Below, piece by piece: positions 2,885 through 34,319 of a stretch of 36,268 nt of DNA. The stretch is taken from the NCBI RefSeq assembly GCF_001194135.2, contig NC_068985.1, forward strand, positions 75,260,886 through 75,297,153, in the 5' to 3' direction. Made by a program: the position numbers and the translations under genes. This DNA is from Octopus bimaculoides (taxonomy: Eukaryota). Under the pieces are notes generated by a model. The model was not told the DNA's origin, made no database searches, and saw nothing but the letters and a program-made list of their open reading frames with translations. Within the stretch, counting starts at the first letter, position 1; each line of letters starts with the position of its first letter.

Positions 2885-2960
2885 CGTGTGTGTGTATGTG
2901 CGTGCGTTTGTGTGTGTGTTTGTGTGGTTGTGTGTGTGTATGTGTGTGTGTATTGTGTGT
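2816..2960. repeat. (GT)n microsatellite
   Basis: Direct reading. Confidence 0.97.
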
Positions 2961-3457
2961 ATAACTTGCGAGATTCCACACAGTTTCATTCACACGGTAT
3001 AGTTTAGATTGGAGCCCTGATAGGGAACACTTTTTCAATATACATAGATCACGACATGAACAAGAATCCTCTTTGTTGCAAAAAGAACTTCTTAAATACA
3101 GTTAAACCTGCACTTATATTATATTTATAATAATCTATTTATATACGTAAAACATATCTATATGCATTGAGTGCCTATAAAAGAAATGTCAACCATCTCT
3201 CCTTCATGAAAAATTCATAGTCGCTAAATAAATTATTTTACTTGCGATACATGGCCTTTTACCTTCAGAATGTTTTCATCGTCAAGCGGAAGATCTCACA
3301 TTTTTACTGGAAATGTCGAGATGAATAAGAGATATTATTCAACAAACATGTTAGTAGTACATCCAACAATATTCTATGACGACATGACATTTATAGTAAT
3401 GGAACATGTGTGTGTGCACCCACGCGCGTGTATAGACATGCGCATACACATAATTCA

Positions 3458-3562
3458 TATATATATATATATATATATTTATTTATTTAGATAGATAGAT
3501 AGATAGATACGTACATACATACATAGATTCTCTGTGTGCGCGCGCCTGCNNNNNNNNNNATG

Positions 3563-3622: not shown

Positions 3623-6054
3623 CTTTCTGTATGTGCGTGTGTGTGTGAATGAGTGCTTGCCACATTAAAATATGCTATGTTTTGTATCAGAACATGATGT
3701 TTTTTTTTCTAATGGTCCGCTGGCTTACATTGATGGTATACTCAAAATTATAAAGGAGTCTCATCCTTAGATGCAATAACAATAATGATGTAGGTGATCA
3801 TGTAGATAGAAGAACAACTGTAGCAGTAATTCCATGAGGCAGGAGTAGGAGATGGGGAGGAGGTGGTGGAGTACTGGATGAGATGGAGCAGGTGGAGGAA
3901 AACTTGCGGAAAAACGGAAAGCAGAGTTTGATTGAAAGGAGAATGATTAAGTAATGCAAGAGTAATTTATTTTGTACTGCCATACTTCCGTCAATGTTAT
4001 TTTATGGCAAAGTAAAAACACAAATTAATTTGAATAAATTCAAACGATCAAATGAAGAGGTTAGTTAATCAAAAAGTTACAGGAAAATTATGCAAAAAGA
4101 CGTTTATCGCATTAAAAAAAACTTCTTAGACTTCATTATCAAAGCATAGATTAACTGTGATTAGAAAAATGTAGAACAACAAGAGAGATGAGAAACATTT
4201 CATTTGAGAATGAAAAGAGATTTCTTATAAAATAACAAAAAAATAAATGGGGAAAAAAATAAACAGAGATGACTACTGAATGGAAATTTCTAGTAAGGTG
4301 ATCACTGCAACATTTATTGGGTAAACAAAGAAATTTTAATTAATCAAAATTATGCCGCTAGTGACATGAAGAATCTCTTTGTACTTTAGTAATTTTAGTT
4401 TAAAAAAGGACGAGATGATAATCTCGAAATCATTTGTAATTATGATTTATTAAATATAGAAATGTTATGTTCTCGAAATTTATGTATTAGCTTAATATAA
4501 GTTTGATTAAGTTTTCTGCAGTGCAGAAGAGAGGTTTTAATAAAAGCCCAACACATTCTGGACAATGAAATGCTTGCTTTGCATTCTATTTCGACAGTCG
4601 TTAACTTTAGACTTTACCTTATCAAGCATAGATGATATAACGGTTGGAAATATTAGTCTCATATTCTCCAAGTTTATGTAAAAATTAAAGTGGTGAAAAG
4701 TGTATTGCAGTATTGTTGGTATTATAGGAAAGCGAGCAGGACTAAAGTTTGCAGCGAGATTGGACTCTTTTAAACGAACACAAAAGTATGAAAATGTGTC
4801 ACATTGCTTACTCGTTGAAAAAAATAAACCTTCACTTCCGAAAGAGGATCAATGAGACAAAAGCTACATTCTTTTTCAGTTCTGTCATTGCGATTCGTCA
4901 AAACTGTTTATATACAGCTATATTAATCTGAAGAAAAGTACGTGTGTGTGTGTGTGTGTGTACTTGTGTGTCTGTGTACTTGTTTGTGTTGTGTGTGTGT
5001 ACTTCTCTCTGTGTGTGCATGTGTGCTTACGTATGTATACATAAATGATGCATGTCTATATATATATGTGTGCATGTATGTATATTTGTAGGCAGGCAGG
5101 CAGGCAGGCAGTCAGACAGGCATGTTTTTATTTACAGGAAGAGAATAAAAAAGAAAAATAGATAGATAGTCCGGTCGATAAATGCTCAGACAGATTAACA
5201 TTTATATGATTTATGTTGTTTCATATGTAACGTGATTCATACCCTATACACTGCCTTCAAGCTGCGCGCTAGATTAGACACATTGTATTATCGCTTTTAT
5301 TTCTCTTATATCTACTTTCGAATTTTGTCGATATTGCTTTTTGGTCTTTGACGTGGAAAACATAAATATCAGTAGTATATTTAATCAATTATAAAACGCT
5401 CCTAAACAAATTTCATTCCATGTATCGCTAAGAAGAGGAAATAATTATTTAATATTAGATGAGAACGGATATAACTAAATATGTCTAGATTAACAGAGAC
5501 GAATAACGTTTTGGTAGTCACATGTTCCTTGATATTTCAATTCATCGTAACCATTGAAATTATATACTATACATAGTTCCTGTTTGACTGGTGTAATTAT
5601 TATATGTTTATGTAAAGGAATGCTGCATTTTCAATATTTTGCATTGTTATTATCTCTGAAATATGAAGATCCAGATATCCAGATTCTAAATAGCAGAAAT
5701 AATGCTAAGTACAATTTCCATATAATATATGATATTTGGTAAAGTTGTTTTCTCCCGTTTATTAATTCTACCATCAAAAATATAGGTTCGTAAATGCTTC
5801 TTGGAATATGCAACGCTAAAATGACACTCGCTTGTTAAATAAACGATACTACTTGAATACGTTTAATGTTATACGTTTCAAACACTTGGCACAACTGTCT
5901 TTGATCATCAAATAACATTTCTGTCGGCACGCTGCTTATTTACTCCTTTGCCAAAGCCAATATTTCAAACTATAGCAACTATTCCAGAATAATGATTACC
6001 CTCAAAATAAAACTGTAGAACACTATCTGTCGTCTGTATATTCCAATATAATTT

Positions 6055-6235
6055 TGCTCAAGTTACAAACGTCCACTCCGGTATAGCGGTATAGTTAGTT
6101 AGACAAGTAAAGACACGACTATCTATCGCCAACTACCCGACTGACACTCCTAGACTACTTACGTCACAGTATTTGTAACGACTAATATGTACCATTATGC
6201 AGGAGTGTTCCATTATTATTATTATCTCCATAACA
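6055..6235 (-). repeat. 3' LTR of Gypsy element
   Basis: Direct repeat of 9076-9254 (about 12 mismatches in a ~110-nt core, counted by eye). Begins TGTTATGG on minus, immediately after the purine tract AAGGGAAGA. Confidence 0.88.
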
Positions 6236-6244
6236 TCTTCCCTT
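6236..6244 (-). promoter_or_regulatory. Polypurine tract (PPT)
   Basis: AAGGGAAGA directly abuts the TG of the 3' LTR. Confidence 0.7.
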
Positions 6245-6734
6245 ATAATTTTTTTCCTTTGAGAGTGTACTGTGTAATTTTTCTTAATAACAATAATTTT
6301 TACATTGACCCACCTCCATTTTTGATTGTTTTTTATCTTCTTAATACAGTGACAAATTTGATAATTTTTCGTTTGGCATCCATTTCCAGGAACTCCGTAC
6401 ATTTTCTTTTTCTTTCGCTTTTGCGTCTGGGTTCAATTATTTGTAGTGGCGTTGGTAGTTGAAAAGTATCATCTATCAATTCCATTGGTTCATCCATTCC
6501 CTTGGATTCTCTCTCAACGAATCTTTGTTTAGTTGGTTCATGTGTCCCTTGTATACCCCTTTTCTTCATTTTACTACGAATAGCATTTTTCTACACGTTT
6601 GGTAATTACACCATCTTCCTAGCTTGGTTGGCTTTTCTTATATGCCTGAATACCTTTTCACCAATTTTGAAATATCGTGCTGTATTATCCATTGCAATTT
6701 TTCTTTTCTGACCAGGTAGTAATTTGTGGAAAAC

Positions 6735-7187
6735 TTATATTATTTTCCTCGCAAAAATCAACTCCGCTGGTGTCATATCTGCAGGTGTGTCTGGATTTGT
6801 TTTCGCAGGGTATACCCTTAAGAATTGTTGTAAAGCTACCTCATTCGTAACTTCTTTATTGGACTTTCTTCGGGATCTCTTCAACGTATCGACATTGCGT
6901 TCTGTTTGTCCGTTAGATCTGGAATGGGATGGCACCGTAGTTAGATGTTCTACAGCGAAAATCTCACAAAACGTTTTAATCTCAAAAGACATATTGCGTT
7001 CCATTGCCAGACATTATCGCGTCTGGGACATCAAATCTCACTAACAGCTCATGCAGAAAATGTGTCCCAGTTGAGGAGGTGGGCTGTTTACACCTACAAA
7101 TTTCTGGTCATTTAGAGACACTATCTACTATCACTAGTATGAACCGTTTAAGGGATTAGCGAAATCGATGTGTTGTCACGACCACGG
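6735..7187 (-). pseudogene. Gypsy integrase core remnant
   Basis: PWS*QHIDFANPLNGS...RFDVPDAIMSGNGTQ and HSRSNGQTERNVDTLK...TPAELIFARK; contains stops and frameshifts. Confidence 0.88.
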
Positions 7188-7199
7188 AACATCTATTCT

Positions 7200-7596
7200 T
7201 CCCCAAATTTAAATAAGCCATGGATAATAAGAGTGAGCATTCTTCTACTCGGATTTTTAAATATGCCTCCGAGAGGTCTAATTTTGGGAAGAATTTCCAT
7301 CCATTCAATTTTTCGAACGTATCCTCAGAACTCGGCAATAGGTAGTTATGTAAGATTAAGCAATCTTTCAACCCAGTTGAAAAATCTGCACAAACTCTTA
7401 ACTTATAATTCTTCTTTTCTGAATGGTCCGCCTTCTCGATTATTCCTAGGTTTTCACGTCTTTCAAGTTCCTTAATTATCTGTTTCAATGCCGCGAATGG
7501 TACATTCCGTTTTGGCTTAAATACAGGTGTTGCACTTTGTTTTACTACAATTTTTGTCTGTTTTCGTGCAGCAAACCACTTCATCCTAGAAAACAT
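7200..7596 (-). pseudogene. Gypsy RT N-terminal part (motifs 1-3 only)
   Basis: PVFKPKRNVPFA...LRVCADFSTGLKD...KLDLSEAYLKI, ending at GLFKFG. Confidence 0.9.
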
Positions 7597-7741
7597 CTGG
7601 AAATAAATGTTATATTTTTCGTTTCAATCCCTCAGCTCCATTCAAACCTTCGACTGACCCGACAATATTCTCATACAAAATATTTATGGACGTATTCCAC
7701 AATTTGAACAGATCTATCCACTCAGTGCCGAATAGATTAAC

Positions 7742-8017
7742 TTAATCTTTTAACACATATACGTTTGGCGTTCTCATTTGGTCACGAAATGTCACATTAC
7801 ACACTAATTCACCTACAACAAACAAACTTATCCCCGTAACACCGTGTGTTGCTTTTGTAGATTTACTTAATTTTGGCTTACCGATATACTTCCAACTTTC
7901 TTCATTCACAATGTTAATATCACTGCCAGTATCTAACTGCATTTTTACTCTTATATTTTCAATTTTCACATTTATGAATTTCCTCTCTGTCACATTATCA
8001 TTTTCTGTCGACGACAT
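7742..8017 (-). pseudogene. Gypsy aspartic protease remnant
   Basis: VKMQLDTGSDINIV retropepsin motif. Confidence 0.9.
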
Positions 8018-8069
8018 CTTGTTTTCTCTTTTTTCTTTCTTCCAACGCTTTGTTATCTTGGTTTTACAG

Positions 8070-8991
8070 TGCGCTTTTACGTGTCCAATTTTTCCACAGC
8101 GGAAACATTCCGCTTTCGTAAATGTGCAGCTTTCTCTCAGATGTAGACCTCCGCATGCGTTTGTTTCCTGATTCTAATCCTGTTTGTACTGTATTTTAGT
8201 ACACACTTAATTTTTATTCTGCCTGTTTCGCACTTGGTTCGTTTAGGAGAAATCTCTGTGTTCAATTTTCTCTGTGTCGTGTTTTACATATTCTTTCACA
8301 CTCTTCTGACACTTGTTGTAAGGTTTCAGCTTGGTTTGGTTCCAGCTTAGTGAGAATCCTTGTTCTTCTGCGTCTTTTTCTGCAGTTAGTCTCTTCGTAA
8401 ATATCAGGCACTTGAACATATCTTGCGTTAATCCATCCAGTTTGAGTTTTTCACATTCTCTGCTAACTCTACTAGCATATGTGATGTAGTCCCCCTCGTT
8501 GTTCTTTTGTAGGTTTAAACATTTCCAGCTTGTATTGAATAACGTGTTTTTTCTCCATAAAAATTTTAAACAATATATCTATTTTATTTTCAATGTTTAT
8601 GTCAGAAGGTTTCTTCGGAAGTACGCAATAGCACTCCTGCTGCCAGTTTTCTTAGGATTAGACGTATTTTCATATTGTCGTACCAATATTTCCATTCTTT
8701 ATTGAGGATCTATTCGTATCATCTGTAGTACGCCTGGTTCATACTTATATTCCGATATTGAGGTTACAACATAATCTGGCGAGAACATCTTTTCAGCATT
8801 TGTTTTGACAACTTACTATTCATTAATTTCAGCATTTGTTGCTGCTGTAATATTAATTGTTCTTGCTGTTGTTGTCCTTGCAGTTGTTGATGCTGCTGTT
8901 TTTGCAACTCGAGCAAGCCGGCCAAAACTTCTTTCATGATTTTACGTTTTTGTATACCGTAAAATTCGCACAATAAACGTTTGAGTTTCAT
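8070..8991 (-). pseudogene. Gypsy gag remnant with CCHC zinc knuckle
   Basis: CFRCGKIGHVKAHC (CX2CX4HX4C) at ~8075-8115, Gln-rich N-terminus, FSPDYVVTSISEYKYEP and LPKKPSD segments. Confidence 0.82.
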
Positions 8992-9075: not shown

Positions 9076-9254
9076 TGTCGAAGTGCTATAATGTCCTTCT
9101 CCGGTATAGCAGTATAGTTAGTTTGATAAGTAAAGACACGACTATGTATTGCCGACTACCCGACTGACATTCCGCGACTCCCTACGTCACAGTATGTGTA
9201 ACGACTAATGTCACGTGGGAGGTGTGTTACATTATTATTATTATCCCCATGGCA
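9076..9254 (-). repeat. 5' LTR of Gypsy element
   Basis: Matches 6055-6235; TG...CA ends (minus strand TGCCATGG...TTCGACA). Confidence 0.88.
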
Positions 9255-10255
9255 TCATCCATTAAGGTCATTCAATTAGAAGTTTAGAGATTCGTATTTT
9301 AACAGCATCTGTAAGAAATGTGTGGTTCAGAACCATCATACTAAGGCGAAATTGAAGGTTGTCAAACTACGAGCCCAAATGCATGATGGGTCGTATCACA
9401 TGAATCTCGCCTGCCCAATCATAACGATAATAATTTTGTTCTGGCTTGCTTTGGGATAATGTTCTAACTAGTTTCTTCAATTATTTCATGAATTATACGG
9501 AATTATTTTGTTTACTTAAACTTAATTGTAATTAAGTAAATGATACCTGCGGAAAGAAAATAGACCCAATCAAGGAGCCAATTTAATCAGGAAACCATTT
9601 TGGAGTAGCTGGATCTGCTGGAAAAAACAGTCAATTTTCAATCTACCCCTCACCCTTAATTAAAGAAAAACATATTGGTCAATGTAGCTTCTAATAAAAA
9701 ACAGAAATAAGGGAATACATCTCTTACCATTGGTGTTTCCAAGCATGGCTGACTTGGAGATATATCAATACATACTCGTGAATAATTTTACTGGAGAATG
9801 TCAATGGCGAATTTCACAGCACTACGTGAAAATAGAGATTTAATTTGCCATGAATAAGAGCACATAAACTGTCACAAGTCTCACTTTTTTCAAATCACTT
9901 TCTTCTATATTTTATACTTTCCAACCGGTCTAATTCACAACGTGAAAAGTTCATTCGTCCCTTGTGTTTTATATTCTTACCACTTAATTTTTCGATCTGT
10001 CTCTTCTCTCTAAAAAATCGTTAAATGCGTAAAAGTTCAGTATAGAGTAGCCAAGAACTTTTTCAGCCATCTAATGCAAGTAATGTTATTTTAACTTATA
10101 ACAACTTATTCAAAAAGTACCCAAAATGTAGAAACGTTCGCTCAATATATTGTGCACTCTACTTTAATATCGCAGATTTCACTGGATTACACATATTTCA
10201 TTAAATTGCCAACGTTATGCCTAAATCAGAAACTACTATTATTATTGTTATGTTG

Positions 10256-10573
10256 TTTTTTTTCTTCTTTCTTCTAATTTTCTTCCATTTCTCGCCGAGT
10301 CTTTTCCGTACACCTAGGGCAGAGAAACTCGTTGTATGCATTCCCAGTTTACACACGCAAATTCACAGGTAAAACATGTATTTAAGAAAAAAAAATTCAT
10401 GAATGAATGTTGTTTTCAGTGATAATGCTCTTCTCAGTACATGAGTCGTTCCAGTTAACACGATTTTTTGCACTTCCTGTAGGGATGGTAAGCCTGGTAT
10501 CATTTACAAATAGGTTTCAGTACCTTTTTTTATCATTCCTAGAGACCCTACAATCACTGGTATGGTAGTCACC

Positions 10574-10574
<1 letters not shown>
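10256..10574 (-). mobile_element. R4/Dong copy Z: extreme 3' end, heavily 5'-truncated
   Basis: VTTIPVIVGSLGMIKKGTETYL*MIPGLPSLQEVQKIVLTGTTHVLRRALS, the RLE C-terminal segment shared with copies A, B, C and E, then a 3' UTR and short AAT-like tail. Confidence 0.82.
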
Positions 10575-10637
<63 letters not shown>

Positions 10638-10698
10638 CATTCTTATTATTATTAGGCTTTGTGCCTATAGTAGAATGGGTTATTATTATCATTATTAT
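10575..10698. repeat. (ATT)n tract containing a SINE-3'-end-like motif (10658-10675)
   Basis: Direct reading. Confidence 0.92.
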
Positions 10699-13451
10699 AG
10701 ACGTCACTCAGTATACAGTATCGTTAGGTTGTTGACTGAAGATATTGTGTCACAAGCTTCACAGACGGACAGTACTTTACGCAATGTGCGTTCATTTCCA
10801 AGTAACGCCGACTTTTGCAATAGATCTAGATTGTAGGGTTTTTCTAAAGTTTTCTGATGATATTTCAGATTGGGTGTTATTGAACCCAATGCTCCGTTGA
10901 CAACAGAGATAAAATTTGTTTGACTCCTGTAGGTGCCACATCCCAGCGATCTCATGTCTCAGGTCTCCATATTCATCAATCTTTTCTCTTATTTTCATGA
11001 TGATATGTTTATCTGACACTGCTACGTCAATTATTAGGCACTCTTGTTTGTCCCACCTAAAGGTGCTATGTTACCATGCCTATCAAGTAGTCAGTCCCAG
11101 AGGATTTTTGCCTTCCCCATTTCGCCCATTACTTTTTCCGGTGTATGTTGGTACGAAGCACCCGTAACATCATGTTCATACTTACGGCATAGTAGCCAGT
11201 TAGAATTTGGGGGCTACCTTGTTGTGTCTAGGCTTGTACTTTTTCTACACAAGATTTTCACAGGCACTAACAATGTGAGTCACGCTTTCGACTCTCTTCC
11301 CATACATTCTGCAGAGGTCCGTTGCACTTGTGTGGTATATATTCTTTTTCACTGAGTTGGTATTTAATGCCTGGTCCTGGGCAGCGATGATTAGGCTTTC
11401 AGTATTCTTTTTTAGGTCGACCTTGTTAAGCCACCTCCCTGGTGCTTCCTAGTCTTTTAATTTGTTGACTTCATGGTTGAACTGACCATGTAATTTCAAT
11501 CGGAGTAGGGTTTCTTCGCTGTCGCTGGCTGTTCATGATCGGAATTCATGAGCACTCTCAAGTCCATTTTTATAAAATCCTTCTGAATTAACAGCATACT
11601 GTAGCAGGTCTTGTTTGCTGTTTACTAAATATTCTACCATGCTTCTTCCATTGTTGATGCACTCCTGTACGCTAATCGGTCCATGTGCACCTTTACCGCT
11701 CTTCATGTAGAGCCTGTGTATATTCGCCTTAGGGCACCATACACTGTCATTGTCTTTCGAGTTGTGCGATCAAGTTGGTTAATCTCCGCTTGTGTTCATT
11801 TAAGGATAAGTGAACTATAGCAGACTAGAGCAACGGCTCATATGTTGATGGCAGTCACAAGGTTCCTTAAGTTGAGTTTTGAATTCAAGAGAAGTTTAAG
11901 TCGCTCGAAATATGCAGTGATGACCTTATCTTTCATTTCTTTATGCAAGTTATTATCCAGCTCCAAGATCTGAAGGTACTTGTACCCATCATCATCCGGA
12001 TCTTCCATTCTCTCCCCGTTTGGCAATCCTATGTCCCTACAATTCACTCTTTTTCCCCGCTTGAACGTAAGCACCGCACACTTTGAAATACCGAATTCCC
12101 TCCCTTGAATGTAAACAGCTTATTTTGATTGTAAAATTTGTTCCTCTTCTCAAATCCTCGTATTCTTTGAGCTTTCGCTTGGACTCTTTGTTGCAGTGTT
12201 TCTTTTGTTGAAAGAAGTTCTTCTCTTGGTGAGAATCTATGTTTCCTTTTCATCTTTCTTCCTTTTCTGGTTTTTACATTGTTTCCACAGATTTGTTCAT
12301 TTAATATTGATATTTCATCTCTCATTATTTCAATCTCTTTTTCAATTTTACTTTTCCAATTTGGAATTCTTCCCAGGTTTGTATTTCTTTGTTTTTTCAC
12401 AGGCATACAACAGGTTTGAATTGTCTTACCAGCTGCATATATAATTTCATTTAATTCAGTGAGATCTGGATTTAGTTCGTGTATAATTTCCTTTGTTACA
12501 TAGTTTACAATTTTAATTTGTTTTCTATTTTGGATTGTATTTGAGAGCTTTTGAAGTGGCGTGGCTTACTCAGCTTATTCAGGATTTTCTGCTTCAGATC
12601 TATTATAGACTCTCTTATGTTTTTAGTAAATGTGTTGTCTTCAAATATTGTTTCTTTACCACTTTCTTCGATATCTTTATCAAGCTCATTACAATTTATT
12701 TCTTCAGATGTTTGCGTGTTCTGGTCACATGACAATTTTTCAATTGAGACTCGTGGAGAGTTTCTCTCTTCGTCTGGTTCTTCATTTCTTTTCTGTCTTA
12801 TATTTAAGTAATTTTCCTCTGCGTGCTTGATCGCGGTTATTTCACTACATGTGAGTCTTTTATTTCTGAAGATGTCCCTTCTACCATTTGCTAACTTGTT
12901 GTCTTGATTTTGTGTTCTCCATATTTGATAAGAGTGTGCGCTGTGTTTCTCTTCGGGTGGCCTGCCTAATGCATAGTAATAGGCATATATTGCTTCTATA
13001 TACTCTTCTCGGGTTCATTTGATCCTCTAATATTTTTCTCTCTTGAAGGGTTTGAGTTCGAGCAGTTCCCGTTCAAGTAACCATCCAGGTTCGTATTCAG
13101 AGACGAGTCTGTGCCAGTGGATGACTTCTCGACCCGAAGCTGGCTCTCTCATGGGAGACGCGCTTTCAGATTAACCATAGGACAAGCGATTTGGTGTACT
13201 ATTGTACCTTTTGGTTTCGTTCGTAAGACGTATTTGTGCTACACTAAAATGATTACTATTGAGCTCTATATTGTGGAAGATGTAGAGACGGTTGATGTCG
13301 ATGCCACTACTATCGACTCCACCATTAATACCGTTACACTCACTTTAACGTTGCTATTACAACATTGCTCAAAGTTAGTTACCACCAATAGTGCCTTGAT
13401 GTGTATGCTTTTGGCTAACCTTTGTAGCCATGGCGACAGTATAACCATTAG
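10699..13451 (-). mobile_element. R4/Dong copy A: both ends present, RT core deleted
   Basis: N-terminal domain with IPNWKSKIEKEIE...LQQRVQAKAQRIRGFEKRNKFYNQNKLF, joined to EFGISKCAVL and GYKYLQILE (RT 6-7), then thumb, ZnF/RLE remnants and the C-terminal VVNGALG...LLQKSALLGNERTLRKVL. Confidence 0.88.
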
Positions 13452-13480
13452 TTTGTGCCTTTAGAAGAAAAGATTATTTC

Positions 13481-13482
<2 letters not shown>

Positions 13483-13558
<76 letters not shown>

Positions 13559-13587
13559 CATTATTATTATCATTATTATTATTATTA

Positions 13588-13648
<61 letters not shown>
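13483..13648. repeat. (ATT)n microsatellite between Dong copies A and B
   Basis: Direct reading. Confidence 0.97.
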
Positions 13649-13650
<2 letters not shown>

Positions 13651-15495
13651 GTTTGACTTTTGCTTTGTATTTGTACAAGTTGGCTCTAAGTCTCACCCAG
13701 AGTCCTCAAGAGAAAAGTTAGAAGTTCATTTTGATGTTATGAATATGGTGTCATATATTTGATTTTGTACATAGTGTTGTTCTTGAGAATGTATTAGAAA
13801 ACAAGAAAATTATAAGTTTGTTTTAAAATTTGAGATTAAACAAACTATTTTACGTAAGACATGAGCAATTCCCATGCGCACTATTTGAAGTTCTGTCATT
13901 TTGGGGTTTCCTGGTATCTGAGATAGGTAGCAATCAGCCCCGTTTGCTATCATTCTTAGGGCACCTATGACAATAGGTATTGTTTTAGTCTTCAGATTCC
14001 ACATTTTGCCAATTTTTATTTCAAGATCTTTATACTTGCTCAGGTCTTGACAGATACATTTATGTCGATTGGGACAGTCATATCAATGAGGTGGCATGAT
14101 TTTTGTCTGGAGTCTTTCAATATGATGTCTGGCCTATTTGCATCTGTCTTTCTGTCAGTTTGAATGGTGAAGTTCCAGAGGAGTGAGATGAGATTATTTT
14201 CAATCACTCTTGGTGGTTAGTGTTCCCACCAGTTTTTTTATCATGAGGAAGGTACATGATTTTCCAAATTACCCAGTGAATATATTGTACTGCTCTGTCA
14301 AGCTTCTTGAGATACTCTGTAGGTGCAAGAAGACTCCACATGGAGACGAAAAGGTCAATGGTTTCATTTTTTTGTTGGTATACATGACATGTGGGGAACC
14401 TGCCGTTCTTTAATATGTTGGCGTGGTAGTTTCTTGTAGGCAGGTATTGATCATGGGCTGCTATGATAAACCCATCTGCTTCTGATTTTAATCTAGAAGA
14501 CACTAACCATTAATGGGTTAGGGCTTGGTCAACATCGGCACTATTAGCTCTCTTTGCGTATTTTCCATTGAGAGGTTTTTCTTGCCATTTATCAGTAAGA
14601 ATATCTAAGGTAGCAATTTTAGCATGGGTTTTGATATGCTTAGCTTTTTCTGTGCTTGTTTCTAGTACGTCTAATTCTGGAATTTGTTCTATTTGGAATT
14701 CACTTAGATATTTCTTTGCCTGTTTATTTACTGAGAATGATGCTTTCTTGTTTTCATGATTTAAGGCAAATTTCAACATCCAGTCCTCAGAGTTTTTCAG
14801 GTAGGTGTCTATCTCAATTGTGGCAATCTTCATTGTTAATTCCAGTTGAAAAAGTCCAGGGCCACCCTCTTTTCTTAGGACGTAAAGTCGTTCTGTATCT
14901 GCCTTAGGATGGTGCATTCTATGCATCGTCAACAATTTTCGTATTTTTCTGTCAAGATTACATATTTCAGTAATTGACCAGTTAATAATATTGAAACTGC
15001 AAGTCATGTCCGACATGGTTAAATTATCGATCGCTTCGATCCTGATTCTTGCATTCAGCTCTGTCTTGAGTATTGCCCTTACCCTGCAATAACATTCTCT
15101 TCTAATCCTTTCCCTCATCACTGAATGTTTGATTCCGTTCCCTTCAAATATCCCTAGGCATTTGTAGCTCTCTGCTGGTTCTAACTCCTTTATGACATCG
15201 TGCTGGTCAAGATGAACATTGGATGTTTCTGTCATTTTTCCTTTCATAAAGGTAAATTTTGCACATTTATCCAGGCCAAATTGCATCCTGATATCATCAC
15301 TGAATTGTTTAACTATCGCTAGTAAGCCCTTGAGTGTTGGTAATTTTTTTTTTTTTTTTTTTGTAAACTGCTTTAAATCATCCATGTAAATGAGATGATT
15401 TATATTTTTATCAAATATTTTATAGCCGTACTGTGCATCATTGAGCCATTTTGAGAGAGGTATTAAGCTGTTCAAAGTCAGTGTGATTATCCATG
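13649..15495 (-). mobile_element. R4/Dong copy B: 5'-truncated within RT, with RT 5-7, thumb, degenerate ZnF, RLE and 3' UTR
   Basis: ORF 14510-15475 contains INHLIYMDDLK, MQFGLDKCAK and YKCLGIFE. Downstream: EADGFIIAAHDQYLPTRNY, RPDIILKD...IDMTVP and TIPIVIGAL. Confidence 0.92.
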
Positions 15496-15596
15496 AGTAT
15501 TATTATCATTATTACCATTATCATTATTATTATCATTATTATTGCTGCTGTTCTTGTTGTTGTTATTATTACTTATGGTTTCTTATCATTATAATT
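15496..15596. repeat. Degenerate (ATT/ATC/TTG)n spacer between copies B and C
   Basis: Direct reading. Confidence 0.85.
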
Positions 15597-16575
15597 TTAT
15601 TTCAGCTGCCTTATTATCGAGCATCCTCTTGAGGCCAAGAGTAACAAGGGCACCTTTGTTTTGCTATGCATGCTAAAATTATCTTCACATTTATTCCACT
15701 TTAGGTAGAGAGAGCTTTCCATAGTATATGGGCTGTTGGAGTTACCAGGGAGTTGCTTAATATACCTCTCAGCTCCCTTCTTTATAATTCTCAACGCACC
15801 AATTACTACTTTTATTACCGTAGTACTAGGTTTCCACATTTTTGTGATTTCAATTTGCAGATCGTTATAATGAGGAAGCTTTTCGTATTCTTTTCTTGGA
15901 ACATTTTGATCTTCTCTGACAGACATATCTATTAACAGAACAGACAGGTTCCTCTATTGTAGTCCTTCATCACACTGTCCGGTCGATTGAAGTCAATTTT
16001 TCTGTCTGTTTCTATTGGGAAGTTCCAGAAGATCGTGAGACCTCGCCATTTACTACATCCTCTGGATGGTCCCTGTACCACTTATCTTTGGATTTAATTT
16101 TGTAGTATTAACAAGCATTCCAGTGGATGTACTGCCCTAGTCTGTTATGTATTATAAGTAACTCCCTTTCAGCGAGGACTGGGCAGCCAGAAACAACATG
16201 ATCAATTATCGGTGTAAATTTTCCGCAAATTCTGCACGAGTGGTCAGATACGTCTTTACGTGATAGATTCTGGAAGGTAAGCTGTGTTCTTGTGCTGCAA
16301 TAACAAAACCTTCTAGTTCTTTATTCAGACATATCCCTTGTAGCCATTGGTGTGTTAGATTTTGCTCAATATATGGCTTGGAGAGGTGGTTAGGGTATTT
16401 TCCTTGCAGGAGTTTGGCTTTCCAGTTGTCTTTGATATTAATCATGCAAGCTTTCTTTGCTTTTTGTTTGAGGTTTCTGCATCAGTGATCGGTTTTTCAC
16501 TATTTAGATCTCGTTGGTCTTTCTGATTATTAATTTCTAAATCAGGAGAAGCAATGTTAGGTCTGTCTGTATTTG
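15597..16575 (-). mobile_element. R4/Dong copy C: linker-ZnF-RLE fragment
   Basis: WKAKLLQGKY...LEGFVIAAQEHSL, ETDRKIDFNRPD, and KEYEKLPHYNDLQIEITKMWK...VVIGAL. Confidence 0.85.
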
Positions 16576-16579
16576 GGTC

Positions 16580-17355
16580 CTTTTGATCACAACTTCTTAA
16601 CTTCCCAAATTAATCTGTCCTGTCTCTCGACTTTTCTTCCTTCTTTATTGCATACCTTGTCAGCTGGACATGCTATATCTATGATCCATTATAGTCTGTT
16701 TTCTTTCTCAATTAAGACTATGTCCTGTTTCCTATTCTCTATCTCATGGTCGCACTGAATCACAAACTCCCATAGTATCTTTCATTTCTATTTCCGACGA
16801 TGCCTTCAGGTTTGTAGTCGAACCAAATTTTTGATCTGTCAAGTCCATACTTGTTGCAAAGTGTCCAATGAACAAGCCTGGCTATATTGTCGTGGCGTCT
16901 CTTATATTCCTTCTGGGCTATTGGGATACATTGGCTGGTAATATGTCATAATGTTTCACCGTTTTGTCCAGAGATTCTGCACTTATCACTTTCTGTTGTG
17001 TTGTCTATTCTGTATTTTATGTAGTTTGTTCGTAGTGCTTGCTCTTGGGCAGCACAGATTAGAGCCTCTGTTTCCGGTTTTAAATCATCCACAGCCATCT
17101 TTTTTCTCTGTCTATCTTATCTTCAACATCCCTATGAAATTGATTAAGCATTCTTTTCTTTACCCACCTATTTTCAGTTTCATTCGTTTTCAATTTCTTA
17201 TATAGTGCTTTATCTTTGCAATCTTTCATCCTACACAAGCCTGACCTTCTTACTTCTAATAATAGCGGTTCTGTAGCATTTTTACATACTATACTATGTT
17301 GTTTACTTCTGCTGTAATGCTGTGTTGTTATCAAATAAGTCCTCTCCCCTCTCTT
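16580..17355 (-). mobile_element. R4/Dong copy D: thumb-ZnF-RLE fragment lacking its 3' end
   Basis: KPETEALICAAQEQALRTNYIKYRID, EYKRRHDNIARLVHWTLC, and IQCDHEIENRKQDIVLIEK...IIDIACP. Ends abruptly at EVKKL. Confidence 0.87.
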
Positions 17356-17356
17356 T

Positions 17357-17435
17357 TATTATTATTATTATTATTATTATTGTTGTTGTTGTTGTTGTTG
17401 TTGATATCATCATTATAGTTATTATTATTATTATT
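17357..17435. repeat. (ATT)n/(GTT)n spacer between copies D and E
   Basis: Direct reading. Confidence 0.92.
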
Positions 17436-17817
17436 TTCATATACGCACAACAGATTCGACTGTTGGAAATGAAAGAATGCTAACATCGGGCTACAGCAAA
17501 GAACGTTAGATGCTAAGAACCCTCCTAGGTATCCGAGGTGTCCTTAATAACACTGTTTTTTGCTGCAGCTGTACAAACTCGGTTTTATGCCTATTTCTTC
17601 TATGCATTTGTTCAGATCTTTCGGAATAGTTCTCAATGCACCTGTAACTACTGGGATACATTTTACCCGCACTTTCCATAGTCTCATTAATTCTGTGTCT
17701 AGGTCCTGGTACTTTGCTATTTTTTCTTTACCTCTCACATTAATTTTTTGGGGGGACTGTAAAATCAATTATTTGGCACTTTCCATTCTGTTTATCTACT
17801 ACTACTACTACTACTAT

Positions 17818-17883
<66 letters not shown>

Positions 17884-17890
17884 CACCACC

Positions 17891-17942
<52 letters not shown>

Positions 17943-18345
17943 AATCCGGACTTCTAGCTTCTATTAATCTGTTGGTCTGAATTTTAAGTCGCACAACATC
18001 TTGTATTTCGTACTTTCTAGTACTTTACTACTTTATTAGGTTCATGTTCATACCATTTATTAGTATGTGAAAATCCTAGCTTTATACATAACTTTCAGTG
18101 CATTACTCTCCCTAGGTTACTATATGAGTAACACTTCCTTCTTTTGATTTGCATAACCTACATTGGGAATCTACATGGTTTTGTCTATCTTGGCTTTCAT
18201 ACAAATAGTCCTCAATACTTGATCTTATGCTGCTACTAACAAACTTTTTGCCTCTCGCTTCAGCCTTATTTTCTGTAACCATAACCATGTCTCACTACTA
18301 TTATTCCTCGCAACTTCTCTTGCCAGTCAGATAATCTTACTTATT
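17436..18345 (-). mobile_element. R4/Dong copy E: ZnF-RLE-3' UTR, 5'-truncated
   Basis: ETWLWLQK...AKSLLVAA*DQVLRT, then IQTNRLIEARSPDL(V)n-DKQNGKCQIIDFTVP and KEKIAKYQDL...IPVVTGAL. Confidence 0.87.
17797..17940. repeat. (TAC)n-(CAC)n-(TAC)n microsatellite, 144 bp, inside the RLE motif of copy E
   Basis: Flanked in frame on the minus strand by SPDL and DKQNG. Confidence 0.95.
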
Positions 18346-18364
18346 TTTTCTGATTTTTAACTCA

Positions 18365-18377
18365 TTATTATTATTAT

Positions 18378-18440
<63 letters not shown>
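18365..18440. repeat. (ATT)n-(TAG)n microsatellite at the 5' boundary of the Dong array
   Basis: Direct reading. Confidence 0.93.
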
Positions 18441-19659
18441 GTGTTTGATTTGAGGATTTGAAAATTAAGATGAATGTACGGAAAAGTGATTTACGGTATT
18501 TATACTGCCTCTTTATATTGCGAGTTCAACTTGCTATAATTACATGCTATTGCTCAGGTTTTGTTGTCACTATTAGTGTTGTGATGTTGTAATGCTAGAA
18601 ATTGTGATCATATCTTGGTTTGCAGATCATGATGTATCATAATCTGCACTACTATCTCAATCCAATTTTCTTTTCGAATTTCTGTTTCAAATTCTATTTA
18701 AAATTTCTAGCTCTGTCATGTTTCCCCAGCAAAAGTTTAATTGTGCTGGAACGTCATGATGTTTTACCCTTATCACTCTTCATTCTATGTAAATGGATAT
18801 TAGGTAAAGTTTTTCACTTCTACATGGTTATAGAGAGTGCTTCTGCGCTAAAATCTGTGATTAAAATTTTATTAGTTTACAACCATATTGATTCGCTCGT
18901 GTGATAACGTCTGTCTAGCTACAAATGCGTTTCAATCATTTTTCAGCTGGTTCTAGAAAGCTGCTGTGTCAGTTTATATTACTGTTGTTGTAGTATTTGC
19001 TATTGCTATTTTTCTTCATTTCTTGAGTGGTAGCAGTGGCTACTTTGCTACTTGTACAATTTGTTGCTACTGGGAAACTCATGGTGCAATGATTTTACTC
19101 ACTTCTGCCGGTGTTCTTGTTGAGGACAATGGCGGATCCACTACTGCAATCTGCTACCCTATTTGACAAGTCATTGCTGCTATTATTGTTTTTGTTGCTC
19201 TTGTTGGCTTCATTGCTGCTGTTGTTTTTAGCGTTTGATGATTTTGTTGTTAACGTTATTGTTTTTGCTACTTTTGTGACTGATGCTACTGTTGTGATTG
19301 ATGTTACTATTAGTATTTATGGTTATGATATTGCTACGGCTGCGATCCTGTGGAGGTGCTGACCTTAAATTTCAAAGTCACTTTTTACTTTTATTTTCCT
19401 CTCTTGCTACCCAGACAGTAGCGATGAAGTGTTAAAGATATTAATGAAACTTTTGTTTTGGTTGAAAAATTATATTTGCCTAAAATTTCCAGTGGGGCAG
19501 TGAGAGAGAAAAGCACACACTCCCTAAAAGAACTTGTCAGACAGACAAGATAAAACATTGTAAGTAAAATATACAGTCCACTGAAAAGTAAAACAAAACA
19601 TTGACTTACGGAGGTGTTGAAGCAATGAACAACAACGACAATAACAATAAAAACATTTT

Positions 19660-22628: not shown

Positions 22629-23067
22629 NNNNNNNNNNNNNNNNNNNNNNNNNNNNNNNNNNNNNNNNNNNNNNNNNNNNNNNNNNNNNNNNNNNNNNNN
22701 NNNNNNNNNNNNNNNNNNNNNNNNNNNNNNNNNNNNNNNNNNNNNNNNNNNNNNNNNNNNNNNNNNNNNNNNNNNNNNNNNNNNNNNNNNNNNNNNNNNN
22801 NNNNNNNNNNNNNNNNNNNNNNNNNNNNNNNNNNNNNNNNNNNNNNNNNNNNNNNNNNNNNNNNNNNNNNNNNNNNNNNNNNNNNNNNNNNNNNNNNNNN
22901 NNNNNNNNNNNNNNNNNNNNNNNNNNNNNNNNNNNNNNNNNNNNNNNNNNNNNNNNNNNNNNNNNNNNNNNNNNNNNNNNNNNNNNNNNNNNNNNNNNNN
23001 NNNNNNNNNNNNNNNNNNNNNNNNNNNNNNNNNNNNNNNNNNNNNNNNNNNNNNNNNNNNNNNNNNN
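22629..23067. other. Assembly gap (N run) ending in a (GT)n tract
   Basis: N characters. Confidence 0.99.
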
Positions 23068-27795: not shown

Positions 27796-27856
27796 GTTCT
27801 ATATTTAAGAGATGAGGAATTATGTACATTATTTGTCTTCACCTTGTTTGTTGTTT

Positions 27857-27900
27857 ACACAACGTTTCGACTAATATACCCTCAAGCCTTCATCAGGTGT
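27857..27900 (-). ncRNA. Minimal type I hammerhead ribozyme (dimer-type) in pLTR
   Basis: ACAC-CUGAUGA-A-GGCU-(12-nt loop)-AGUC-GAAACGUU-GUGU: intact core, 4-bp stem I, 4-bp stem II with one G-U pair, and a loopless palindromic AACGUU stem III. Confidence 0.85.
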
Positions 27901-28010
27901 CTTGGGGAAATTTCGAACCTGGATTCTCATTCCTAAGGTATTTTTAGATGTTATTATTATTATTGTTATTCAGGTTATTATTTTAGATGTTATTATTATT
28001 ATTGTTATTC

Positions 28011-28060
28011 GGAATCTTGGGGTTTGTAGCCTGCGCTCTTAACCACTACGCCATATGCCC
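28011..28060 (-). promoter_or_regulatory. tRNA-like head with Pol III A-box at the start of the pLTR
   Basis: GGGCATA-TGGCGTAGTGG-TTAAGAGCG; the A box at 28043-28053 matches TRGCNNAGYGG. No canonical B box follows directly. A partial GGTTCGAAA lies at 27911-27919. Confidence 0.6.
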
Positions 28061-28088: not shown

Positions 28089-30410
28089 TTATAAATCTAA
28101 TATTTTCCTATCCTGCCTTAATACCGGTTCCCATATGCTATTCATATCTGCACTTGGTCTGCTTAGGTGATTGTTGTGTCCTAGCATATGTGCTGTTTCT
28201 TTTAGCTCTCGTAATTTCCAGTTGTGTTCTATGTCTATAATTTTAACTTCATCCCACAGTGGGAGGGGGTCTCCATTTTTCCATACATGATCAGCTATAC
28301 CCGATTTATCAATATCTCTTCGTGTCACAGATTTGCGATGTTCCTCTACCCTTATTTTGAGGGGGCGGTATCTTTCGCCTTTGTATAACGTACTACAGCT
28401 GCATCGGATATAGTACACGCAGTTTTTGGTCATATTGTCTTCTATTGGTAGTTTTACTCAAAGGAGATATTTGCGAAGTGTTGCATTACTCTTGAATACT
28501 GTCCTGATGTCATATGTGCCGTATATCTTTTGCATCTTTTCGGAGAGGCCTTTCACATAGGGTAGACAGACTGTAGACAGTTTATTTGTTGCATCCCCTC
28601 TTTTCGTCATAATTGGAGTAGATAGTATGTTTTTCGGGTTGTTGTTGCGTAATAGATTGTTAGTGAGCTTGATCATTTCTTCGTGGTGGGTATCACGATC
28701 GCTACTTATATTCTTTTCTCGATGTTTAAGGCACTGAGCGATCCCTCTCTTTACACTGTATGGATGATGAGAATTGAAGTTAAGTTATCGTCCAGTGAAA
28801 GTCGGCCTGCGGTATACGGATGTCCTGAATCCATATTTGATGCATGTTGTTAATACGTCCAGGAATGCTAGATGATTGTCTTTTCACTTTTCTATTGTGA
28901 ATTGTATGGATGGCTTTTTTGAGTTCACATGATCTAGCAGCACTTGGACATCTTGCTGGTGGGGCCAGAGAATAAATGTGTCATCAGCAAATCGCACCCT
29001 CTTCTTGTCGATATATACCAGTGCCCATACTGAAATAAGTAGTTTCTACACAGAAGGTCAACATTTCCATCAAGTTTCTTATTGGTATACTAGTGTGTTC
29101 TTTTAGATGGGTGTATGTCACTAGATTTTCTTGAATCACCGATAGTTAAGACTTTGGTGAACAGACTTATCACATCTAGACTCACCATTTGGTTAGATTC
29201 AATGGAGGTATCCTTGATTAATTCTCTGAAGTGGGTGGAATTTTTCACGTATGATGTTGACTTTCCTGCTAATGGTCTGATTATATCCACAAGGAAACGG
29301 CTCAGTGGATGACATGCTGAACCTCTACAGTTCACTATAGGTCTTAATGGAATACCATCCTTGTGAATCTTAGGGAGACTGTACACGTGTAGTAGCTTAC
29401 TGTAGTGTTGAGTCAGTTGTCTGTACTTTATTGGTGTAAAGTGATCCTTGTTCTTGATCAGGATCAGTGACAACTTCCCCTCTGGTTTCAGTGTTGGGTC
29501 TTTCTTTACTTTGCTGTAGCTACCATCACTTATAAGATTTGTCAATTTTTCCGAGTAGTCAGGCTTCTTCATCACCACTGTAGCATTTCCCTTCTCCGCT
29601 GGAAGTATTATGATGGAATTGTCACTCTGTATTCTTTTGATAGCGAACGTTTCTTACTTAGTGATGCTTGGTTTGGGAAGTTCCGCTTTTTCCAGTACCT
29701 GTCTCACTTTCCACCTTAGTTCATCTCCCAGAGCTTTTGGTATCTTTACAGCTATCTCTTCAATAGGGGCTATTATGTCCAAGTATGGAATGCGCTTGAT
29801 AGTTGTCGCAAAGTTGAGACCTTTGTTTAGTAATGCTTCTTCAGAGCCTTCTAGATGTTGGCTACTTACATTAATTACTGCTTTCGCAGATGGTTGAGGG
29901 ACTTCAGTTTTCACTCCCTGACCTTTGAGTTTCATAAACTTCTTAATCTGGCGTGTCTTCACCATTTCAAATTCGTTCACGTACGATTCTCTTTCTATCA
30001 TCATCTCTGGTTATTTTCCTAAGTAATAAAGATAACGTCTCTTTGATTTCATTATTTAGTTGATGTTTTTTCCAACGGTTGTAATGGATCCTCTCACGGA
30101 CGAGGGCATGTCCTGCCCTTTCCACTACATCTTTAACTTTATATGAATCCACTGGTGTCATATTCAAGCCAGTTGGTATTAGCTTTCAGTCTCTTCATCT
30201 ACACAGTAAAGTTAGATTGTGTGAAAGACGAGTTAGTTTTTGATGCAGTTTCTGTATAAGTCTCCATTGAAGTCTAATGTCGGCTCCATACCGATTAGAT
30301 AATACAGTTCTATATTTAAGACATGAGGAATTATGTACATAATGTAAAAGCAGAATAGATTTTTTGTCGTGAGCAAAAGGGCTAACGTTACTGTTACAAT
30401 TTTTAACCAC
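28089..30410 (-). pseudogene. PLE RT-GIY-YIG polyprotein, frameshifted, missing RT motif 4
   Basis: ORF pieces 30195-30410, 29967-30167, 29654-30004, 29090-29578, 28458-28676 and 28089-28433 are collinear with a PLE polyprotein. Confidence 0.9.
30347..30359. repeat. Right 13-bp target-site duplication AAAGCAGAATAGA
   Basis: Identical to 27783-27795. Confidence 0.85.
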
Positions 30411-31413: not shown

Positions 31414-32665
31414 TTAAGTTGTTAAGAAAGTTCTTCCGGAATTGTTAATTTTGGTTCTAAATGATGTATTGTCAAATTAACTTTCGTTAAATTACTTTCA
31501 CTTTATATATCATTTTAAAGCCCGTTTTCCCCCTATATAATCGTGTTACTCTTTTCCTTTTAGAATATTTTTTTCCGGAACGTTGAATGCAACATGGACA
31601 AAAAGCAAATTCGCTCAATTTTCTTATTCCAGTTCAAGGTAGGCCGAAAAGCTGCTGAAACATCTCGAGATATGAACGATGCGTTTGGCCCAGGAACCAT
31701 TAATGGTAGTTCAAGAAATTTCGTAGCGGTGACGAGAGTCTTGAAGATGATAAGCGTAGTGGTTGGCCATTGGCTGTTGACAAACGATCAACTCAGAGCC
31801 TTAGTGGAAGACAATCCACGCACAACTGTTCGAGAGCTTGCTTCTGAATTAGACCTAACGTTTACGACAATTTCCAACCACTTGAAAGAGAATGGAAAAA
31901 CAAAAATACTTGAGAAATGGGTGCCGCACGAACTCAACAACAACCAAAAAGAAAAAACCGTTTTGAAGTGTCGTCTTCTCTTTTTGTACGCAACAAGACC
32001 GACCCGTTTCTTGACCAAATTGTGACTTGCGATGACAAATGGATTCTTTACACTAACCGGCGACGCTCAGCTCAGTAGTTGGACGAAGCTCCACGGCACT
32101 TCCTGAAGCCAAAGTTGCACCAAAAGAAAATAATGGTGACTGTTTGGTGGTCTGCGGCCGGTCCCATCCATCACAGCTTTTTGGATCCAAGCGAAACCAT
32201 TACGGCGGAGAAGCAAATGGATGAAATGCATAAGAAACTCCAACAACAACAGCCAGCATTGGTCAATAGAAAAGGACCAATTCTTCTCCACGACAACGCT
32301 CGGCTGCACATCGCGCATCTGACTCTGCAGAAGTTGAACGAATTTTGTTACTAAACTCTGCCTCATCCGCCATACTCATCAGACATCTCGCCTACCGACT
32401 ACCATTTTTTCAAGCATCTCGACAACAACTGCCTGCGTGAGGAATGGTTCAAAAACCAAGACGATGCCAAACACGCCTTCAACGTCTTCATCACCACCAG
32501 AACGCATGATTTTTATGTTACTGGCTAAAATAAACTTGTTTCGCGTTGGCAAAAGTGTGTTGATTTTGATAGTGCTTATTTAGATTAATAAAGTTTTGTT
32601 TGAGCCGAGATATGTGCATCAGAATTTAAAGGTTAAAAACCGCAAGGACTTTCTTGACAACCTAA
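31414..32665 (+). mobile_element. Mariner (DD34D) DNA transposon, near full length, Hsmar1/cecropia-like
   Basis: TIRs 31414-31439 and 32640-32665 (22/26 complementary), flanked by TA at 31412-31413 and 32666-32667. Confidence 0.95.
31594..32588 (+). pseudogene. Mariner transposase, multiple frameshifts and stops
   Basis: MDKKQIRSIFLFQFK, KWVPHEL, TCDDKW, KPKLHQKKIMVTVWW, LLHDNAR and YSSDISPTDYHFF. Confidence 0.95.
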
Positions 32666-34170: not shown

Positions 34171-34319
34171 NNNNNNNNNNNNNNNNNNNNNNNNNNNNNN
34201 NNNNNNNNNNNNNNNNNNNNNNNNNNNNNNNNNNNNNNNNNNNNNNNNNNNNNNNNNNNNNNNNNNNNNNNNNNNNNNNNNNNNNNNNNNNNNNNNNNNN
34301 NNNNNNNNNNNNNNNNNNN
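34171..34319. other. Assembly gap between (CA)n and (AT)n tracts
   Basis: N characters. Confidence 0.99.

Follow-up and report, generated by a model that had tools for sequence, protein, structure and literature searches.

Divergent Dong-like retrotransposon fragments stacked head to tail among TAA tracts: a probable case of repeated targeted insertion into one microsatellite

Dong retrotransposons insert into (TAA)n repeats in insects, molluscs, cnidarians and an ostracod (PMC7998251; PMC3812793, citing Kojima and Fujiwara 2004). For the R4/Dong group, an N-terminus that lacks zinc fingers and bears a diverged Myb/SANT-like block has been described (PMC7998251), and a self-cleaving ribozyme of the hepatitis delta virus (HDV) type has been reported at the Dong 5' end (PMC3774820). 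Some families of the HERO clade are also microsatellite-specific (PMC4640811). The supplements to an octopus paper name matches to LINE/Dong-R4 (LINE, long interspersed nuclear element) without giving their sequence. The present study concerns 36,268 nt of Octopus bimaculoides DNA (contig NC_068985.1), referred to below as the window, which has a GC content of about 33%, contains many microsatellites and is eukaryotic in character. It holds a stack of six Dong-like fragments that most probably arose by repeated, independent target-primed insertion of several divergent (TAA)n-specific lineages into one microsatellite. No explicit description of a co-oriented stack of divergent lineages was found in the searchable literature.

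The six fragments, named Z, A, B, C, D and E, carry reverse transcriptase (RT) and restriction-like endonuclease (RLE) sequence and lie on the minus strand within positions 10233-18440 of the window. Strand and the TAA motif are given on the element (minus) strand throughout. A 560-aa homolog (P0009), which spans the RT C-terminus, the linker, the CCHC motif and the RLE, was used as a ruler. Its tblastn search gave exactly the six minus-strand pieces that the initial annotation of the window had proposed; all matches fell within 10414-18290, and across the 36-kb window there was no match on the plus strand and none outside the stack. Six-frame reading of 9800-18700 gave RT- and endonuclease-like peptides on the minus strand alone, and the five C-terminal strings quoted in that annotation were all found in the sequence. 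As rough, post hoc figures, the probability that all six pieces fall by chance within 22% of the window is about 0.003, and that the five extra pieces share one strand about 0.03.

Along the element strand, the order is (CTA)20, (TAA)5, E, a tract, D, 82 bp, C, a tract, B, (TAA)55, A, a TAA/island/(TAA)27 segment, Z and a tract remnant (Table 1). TAA tracts are present at four of the five junctions (E/D, C/B, B/A and A/Z; D/C is without one), as had been noted at the outset for (ATT)n-like spacers, and also at both outer edges. All pieces with an intact 3' end run directly into TAA, and TAA adjoins the 5' end of every piece except C. Tract purity across the stack varies from 76% to 95% in the Tandem Repeats Finder (TRF) output, and the longest perfect TAA run measures 63 bp. 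Five of the six pieces (Z, B, C, D and E) are 5'-truncated, with differing truncation points. Frameshifts and stops occur in all six; every copy is dead.

The pieces are very different from one another. Pairwise identity among them is 26-49% at the amino acid level, and self-blastn found no nucleotide similarity between pieces except in microsatellites. For comparison, a killifish protein shares 36-62% amino acid identity with the pieces, so that the pieces are no closer to one another than they are to this protein. The stack is therefore not a tandem duplication, and a satellite origin is ruled out on the same grounds; the pieces belong to distinct subfamilies, as first proposed. They have also decayed unequally. 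In piece B the density of disabling lesions is 0.75 per 100 codons, in piece E 3.76, a fivefold difference (Fisher p=0.006). Together with the differences in tract purity, this suggests that the pieces are of different ages, although the evidence is soft. The successive waves of insertion initially envisaged are thus weakly supported by lesion density and tract purity.

The same architecture recurs elsewhere. Ten independent homolog loci, among them loci of killifish, shrimp and anemone, were fetched with 10 kb on either side. In nearly all of the ten, the killifish and shrimp loci included, the element has TAA tracts of the same strand at its flanks. Stacks were found at three of the ten, in contigs without N runs: four elements at L008, two at L010 and three near-full-length ones at L011. 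The L008 elements are all on the plus strand, with TAA tracts at 2939-3035, 6489-6544, 6857-7048 and 9924-9998 between them, and an unrelated RT element interrupts one of the four. Members of these stacks are again divergent lineages (27-50% amino acid identity). All six extra elements at the three loci are co-oriented with the focal element, and with the five of the window the count reaches 11 of 11 (p ~0.0005). The fixed polarity relative to the TAA strand that was proposed from the window is accordingly borne out, and the orientation bias is present in the other clusters.

Some further features were seen at these loci. At L008 (433-1882 and 8313-9500), a different LINE (RVT_1 E 4.5e-35, YADD box) also starts right after (AAT)13 in the same orientation, and a minus-strand RT element is inserted into the third Dong-like copy. 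At L010, a tandem duplication of 1306 bp with 100% identity (6020-8630) ends exactly at the TAA tract before a full-length Dong-like element.

The longest open stretch of the stack (14510-15475, minus; 321 aa) lies in piece B and shows a weak RVT_1 match (E 5e-4, under the gathering score). An exact look-up of this protein sequence found no record. A database search returned 321 homologs at E<=1e-3; identity reaches 54-59% in the best of them, with E values down to 8e-99. Killifish, shrimp, sea anemone and hydrozoan proteins are included, and the homologs carry PF00078. The L008 homolog has an open frame of 1151 codons with matches to RVT_1 (E 2.4e-27) and to a zf-RVT-like CCHC domain (E 8e-4). 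The first ~49 codons of this frame are read-through of the upstream TAA tract and the N-terminal block is absent, so a short piece of the 5' end is missing from this copy. Among solved structures, R2 proteins alone are related to it, and they align from the RT through the endonuclease region (E ~1e-31; R2Bm 2e-20), with query residues 308-1109 covered by 9nl3 and 9dou. Pfam gave no match to Exo_endo_phos or to an apurinic/apyrimidinic endonuclease (APE) domain in the L008 frame or in the N-terminal open reading frames (ORFs) of homologs. Within the stack, pieces A, C and E show CxxC...HxxxxC, of which B and D have degenerate forms, and the motifs 'NRPD(I/S)' and '(L/I)ID' occur in B, C, D and E, the catalytic residues having been read by eye.

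This is the layout of RLE-type (R2-group) non-LTR elements, in which the RT domain comes first, CCHC and a PD-(D/E)XK-type endonuclease follow it, and an N-terminal APE is lacking. Insertion into (TAA)n with fixed polarity, seen at the window junctions and in nearly all of the ten homolog loci, is a trait of the Dong family; the initial annotation had named (TAA)n as the Dong target, and the literature confirms it (PMC7998251; PMC3812793). The pieces are Dong-like, (TAA)n-specific RLE LINEs. The R4/Dong clade label is probable, with a microsatellite-specific family of the HERO clade as the alternative. Piece A and four near-full-length homologs have in common an N-terminal block of the form ...YYxA...P...Y..W...NKLANxRRDI..KRLT, and the N-terminal ORFs of four near-full-length homologs gave no zinc-finger or Myb Pfam match at E<=1, in keeping with what has been published on R4/Dong N-termini (PMC7998251). 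An HDV-like ribozyme was sought with Rfam at two 5' ends, that of A (13250-13520) and that of the L002 element; nothing relevant was found even at E<=10, although the Rfam models may not cover these ribozymes. No conserved 3'-terminal motif before the TAA tail was seen across 17 elements. R2 proper was also considered and rejected: the flanks are TAA tracts, Rfam finds no rRNA in the window, and the match to R2 proteins is remote.

The six pieces were mapped by frameshift-aware alignment onto P0009 and the 1151-codon L008 frame (Table 1). Decay has gone least far in piece B. Piece A follows the full-length L002 element collinearly from near the latter's first bases, but the RT core of A is deleted at ~12105-12112 (~344 codons, 1.03 kb), so that the alignment passes directly from nt 1384 to nt 2421 in the L002 element. 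At its join with C, piece D lacks the last ~56 codons, the 3' untranslated region (UTR) and the TAA tail. The D/C zone (16508-16589) probably belongs to C, as the linker with which that piece begins and which is poorly conserved. Piece E is interrupted within the codons 'RSPDLVVVVD' by (GTA/GTG)49 at 17796-17942, a microsatellite grown from the valine codons of 'RPDLVVVD'. The reverse-complement motif, (CTA/TAC)20 at 18380-18440, lies ~440 bp upstream of it, and the two inverted microsatellites bracket the first half of E. The 25-bp island at 10655-10679 was compared, as a possible shared 3' end, with the rest of the window and with the fetched loci; neither gave a match, and its 13-mer count is at chance level. 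A seventh insertion, reduced to almost nothing by 5' truncation, may be its source.

Table 1. Features of the stack in element-strand order (positions in the window), with the alignment and lesion data of the six pieces.
Feature	Position	Strand	Basis	P0009 tblastn match	L008 frame	Lesions
(CTA/TAC)20 microsatellite, upstream edge of stack	18380..18440	-	TRF row 18378-18440, 100% matches; reading of sequence			
(TAA)5, upstream target-tract remnant, abuts 5' end of E	18365..18379	-	repeat listing; sequence reading			
Piece E, 5'-truncated: linker, CCHC, RLE, C-terminus (IPVVTGAL), 3' UTR	17436..18364	-	P0009 aa 329-559 after microsatellite excision	18267-17509, aa 339-559, E 1e-9 and 5e-5	aa ~920-1151	6 frameshifts + 2 stops = 8/213 aligned codons
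E/D degenerate (TAA)n with CAA and GAT variants; E tail, D 5' junction	17356..17435	-	TRF, 87% matches			
Piece D, both ends truncated; aa 245-503 of P0009	16590..17355	-	tblastn; frameshift-aware alignment	17083-16590, aa 338-503, E 3e-22	aa 839-1095	2 frameshifts + 2 stops = 4/242 aligned codons
D/C junction zone, 82 bp, no microsatellite	16508..16589	-	sequence reading; tblastn; alignment			
Piece C, 5'-truncated: CCHC 'CRICGKFTPIIDHVVSGC', 'NRPD', IKVVIGAL, 3' UTR	15572..16507	-	P0009 aa 288-543	16481-15741, aa 287-535, E 3e-53	aa 869-1129	4 frameshifts + 1 stop = 5/255 aligned codons
C/B degenerate TAA tract; C tail, B 5' junction	15498..15571	-	TRF, 76-83% matches for 15498-15543; full extent by reading			
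Piece B, 5'-truncated: from just upstream of RT YMDD box to C-terminus (IPIVIGAL), 3' UTR	13649..15497	-	RVT_1; tblastn; alignment	15484-13837, aa 12-559, E 6e-139	aa 610-1151	2 frameshifts + 2 stops = 4/535 aligned codons
B/A (TAA)55, 95% pure; B tail, directly abuts complete 5' end of A	13482..13648	-	TRF			
Piece A, complete at both ends: 5' UTR, N-terminal block (...EEYIEAIYAYYYAL...NKLANGRRDIFRNKRLT), CCHC, RLE, C-terminus (ISVVNGALG)	10699..13481	-	collinear with L002 element; N-terminal alignment	12098-10764, aa 75-559, E 2e-30	aa 42-321 and 666-1151	at least 13 in 705 aligned codons
A short tail, TAA TAA TGA TAA TAA TAA	10680..10698	-	TRF; reading			
25-bp island of non-repeat sequence CCCATTCTACTATAGGCACAAAGCC, with a TAA tract on either side	10655..10679	-	reading			
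(TAA)27, 94% pure, Z 5' junction	10574..10654	-	TRF; reading			
Piece Z, last 53 codons (KVTTIPVIVGSLG...) and ~165 bp of 3' UTR	10251..10573	-	tblastn; alignment	10575-10417, aa 507-559, E 6e-15	aa 1100-1151	1 stop = 1/51 aligned codons
Downstream target-tract remnant, six units TAA CAA TAA TAA TAG TAG, then unique flank	10233..10250	-	reading			

Serial targeted insertion accounts well for this anatomy. The starting state would have been a single (TAA)n microsatellite, later hit by members of several old lineages. By analogy with the biochemistry of R2 and Dong, the element protein would recognise TAA/TTA duplex DNA and nick one defined strand, and the nick would prime reverse transcription of the element's own RNA (target-primed reverse transcription, TPRT). 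All insertions would share one polarity because the target is strand-asymmetric. Abortive reverse transcription may have caused the 5' truncations in Z, B, C, D and E, and imprecise 5' joining that deletes upstream target could account for the missing 3' end and tail of D at its join with C. Every insertion inside a tract would leave TAA on both sides, the locus would stay targetable, and the outcome would be a co-oriented head-to-tail stack. The differing truncation points, and a 5'-complete A abutting (TAA)55, are as TPRT predicts. Such a stack is the expected footprint of known Dong biology, with no new mechanism or host function; the stack stands as a record of insertions and plays no role itself.

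Several points weigh against this explanation. The D/C junction is without a TAA tract, and at least one event needs an extra assumption, either deletion of the target or a later deletion. The Exaiptasia element at L007 is 3'-truncated after the '...TTIPVV' codons, where its strand goes on as (TTA)n for ~90 bp (11400-11500), a polarity opposite to every other case, and the L002 element has no clear 3' TAA tail. Finally, the window has N gaps at 3550-3559 (GATA), 22629-23067 (GT) and 34171-34319 (AC/AT), each beside a microsatellite. The scaffolded assembly is fragile at simple repeats, and contiguity across the TAA tracts of the stack is therefore less certain.

This last point bears on the main rival, an assembly artefact in which separate Dong/TAA loci were chained at collapsed TAA repeats; the polarity of the pieces would still agree, since Dong orientation follows the TAA strand. 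The TAA tracts at four of the five junctions are suitable places for such chaining, and perfect TAA runs of no more than 63 bp could reflect collapse. Nevertheless, the stack contains zero N bases and the D/C junction consists of unique sequence. Two of the tracts are degenerate with unique interruptions, the other two are interrupted to perfect runs within the same limit, and the same architecture is found in three N-free contigs of other genomes. A chained assembly is thus considered improbable.

One composite event is a still less likely origin. Several Dong RNAs could have been joined by template jumping in a single round of TPRT, or an older stack could have been transcribed by read-through and the resulting RNA retrotransposed. 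Template jumping by the R2 reverse transcriptase is established. The head-to-tail order and the TAA joins fit end-to-end jumping between RNAs ending in (UAA)n, and upstream of the complete 5' end of A come a TAA tract and then the 3' end of B. The fivefold lesion difference between B and E and the spread in tract purity argue against a single event, however, and most pieces end internally, not at RNA 5' ends. It would also require the co-expression of five or six very divergent lineages in one cell. Passive accumulation in a graveyard of transposable elements, or ectopic recombination between TAA tracts, in either case without targeted insertion at the site, is hardly credible: the window is indeed rich in such elements (a Mos1-type helix-turn-helix (HTH) ORF at 31594-32025, RT-like ORFs at 7156-7596 and 29090-29578, and two copies resembling a short interspersed nuclear element (SINE)), but only Dong-like pieces lie between the TAA tracts, they occur nowhere else in the window, and almost all of the ten other loci show the same TAA association for single copies.

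If serial targeted insertion is accepted, it may be asked whether the insertions also generate target sequence. The initial annotation held that each insertion leaves or extends an AAT tail. TAA is indeed left on both sides of the insertions; as for extension, piece B fits, with a degenerate tract at its 5' end and a long pure one at its 3' end, and element 1 of L008, the most intact there, shows the opposite pattern. It is rather doubtful that Dong-like insertion is a net generator of TAA through fresh RNA-templated or slippage-extended tails, which would make the co-oriented arrays self-propagating, add to the AAT load of the genome and allow read-through expression of promoter-less copies. 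Seven AAT-type tracts are present in the window, five within the stack and two (169-296 and 27951-28009) inside the SINE-like copies.

The SINE-like repeat measures ~130-150 bp, and its two copies (at 27830-28060 and 42-300 of the window, minus strand) are 82% identical. On that strand a TAA tract stands immediately before each of them. For the copy at 28060, tRNA-like A-box/B-box motifs occur upstream of the tract (GGCGTAGTGGTTAAGAGCGC), with GGTTCGAAATTTCC downstream; neither ARAGORN nor Rfam found a tRNA at the repeat. It looks like a tRNA-derived SINE with an internal TAA microsatellite. Since the tract lies inside the repeat, this would be a source of TAA tracts, and hence of Dong targets, that is independent of Dong.

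Other mobile elements have left traces in the neighbourhood. Next to a SINE-like copy, three minus-strand ORFs (28089-30004; 114, 162 and 116 aa) have no Pfam match at E<=0.01; by eye, the first looks like a GIY-YIG endonuclease as carried by Penelope-like elements, and the second like an RT. The plus-strand ORF at 31594-32025 (143 aa; HTH_48 E 1.6e-6, Mos1-type transposase HTH) is the remnant of a mariner-like transposon. Direct repeats of 170 bp at 6076-6245 and 9099-9264, 83% identical and ~3 kb apart, bracket the minus-strand ORF 7156-7596, which reads by eye as a retroviral-type RT and has no Pfam match. This may be a degraded long terminal repeat (LTR) element just beside the stack.

The stack serves as a worked example of how a LINE specific for a strand-asymmetric repeat shapes its site, and it records that many old lineages kept the TAA target. 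Such stacks are assembly-fragile and easily misannotated as tandem duplications or as single long elements. Surveyed genome-wide, they could be used to gauge whether insertion creates microsatellites or merely uses them.

Among described systems, the closest are Dong elements of the R4 clade (Bombyx mori Dong, DongAg, DongBg). Like these, the elements of the stack and its homologs have a single ORF with RT, CCHC and RLE, insert with fixed polarity into (TAA)n, which then flanks them at either end, and are widely distributed in metazoans (PMC7998251; PMC3812793); Pfam gave no zinc-finger match in the N-terminal ORFs, and Dong likewise lacks such fingers. In contrast, the window copies are all dead fragments of at least five or six lineages, and the 5' ribozyme was not detected with Rfam. 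R2, the RLE LINE specific for 28S rDNA (9nl2, 9nl3, 9dou, 8gh6), has the same order of RT, CCHC and RLE, and the full-length homolog aligns with it over ~700-800 residues (E 1e-31 to 2e-20). Nonetheless, the similarity is remote, the target here is a TAA microsatellite instead of 28S rDNA, and there is no N-terminal zinc-finger match.

Arrays at chromosome ends offer a looser parallel. In Bombyx, the target-specific LINEs TRAS and SART interrupt the telomeric (TTAGG)n, likewise a strand-asymmetric simple repeat, and mostly full-length copies have been reported (PMC4700185). HeT-A, TART and TAHRE form tandem telomeric arrays in Drosophila, according to the abstract of PMC11698117. Unlike the pieces of the stack, both groups are APE-type, reside at chromosome ends and have a proposed role in telomere maintenance, whereas the elements described here are RLE-type, mostly truncated and located in an interstitial microsatellite, with no sign of a host function. 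The use of a microsatellite as a safe-harbour target is shared with Waldo at (ACAY)n, Mino at (AC)n, Kibi at (TC)n and Koshi at (TTC)n, as given in PMC3812793 (citing Kojima and Fujiwara 2003 and 2004); those elements differ in belonging to the APE endonuclease class and in targeting other repeat motifs.

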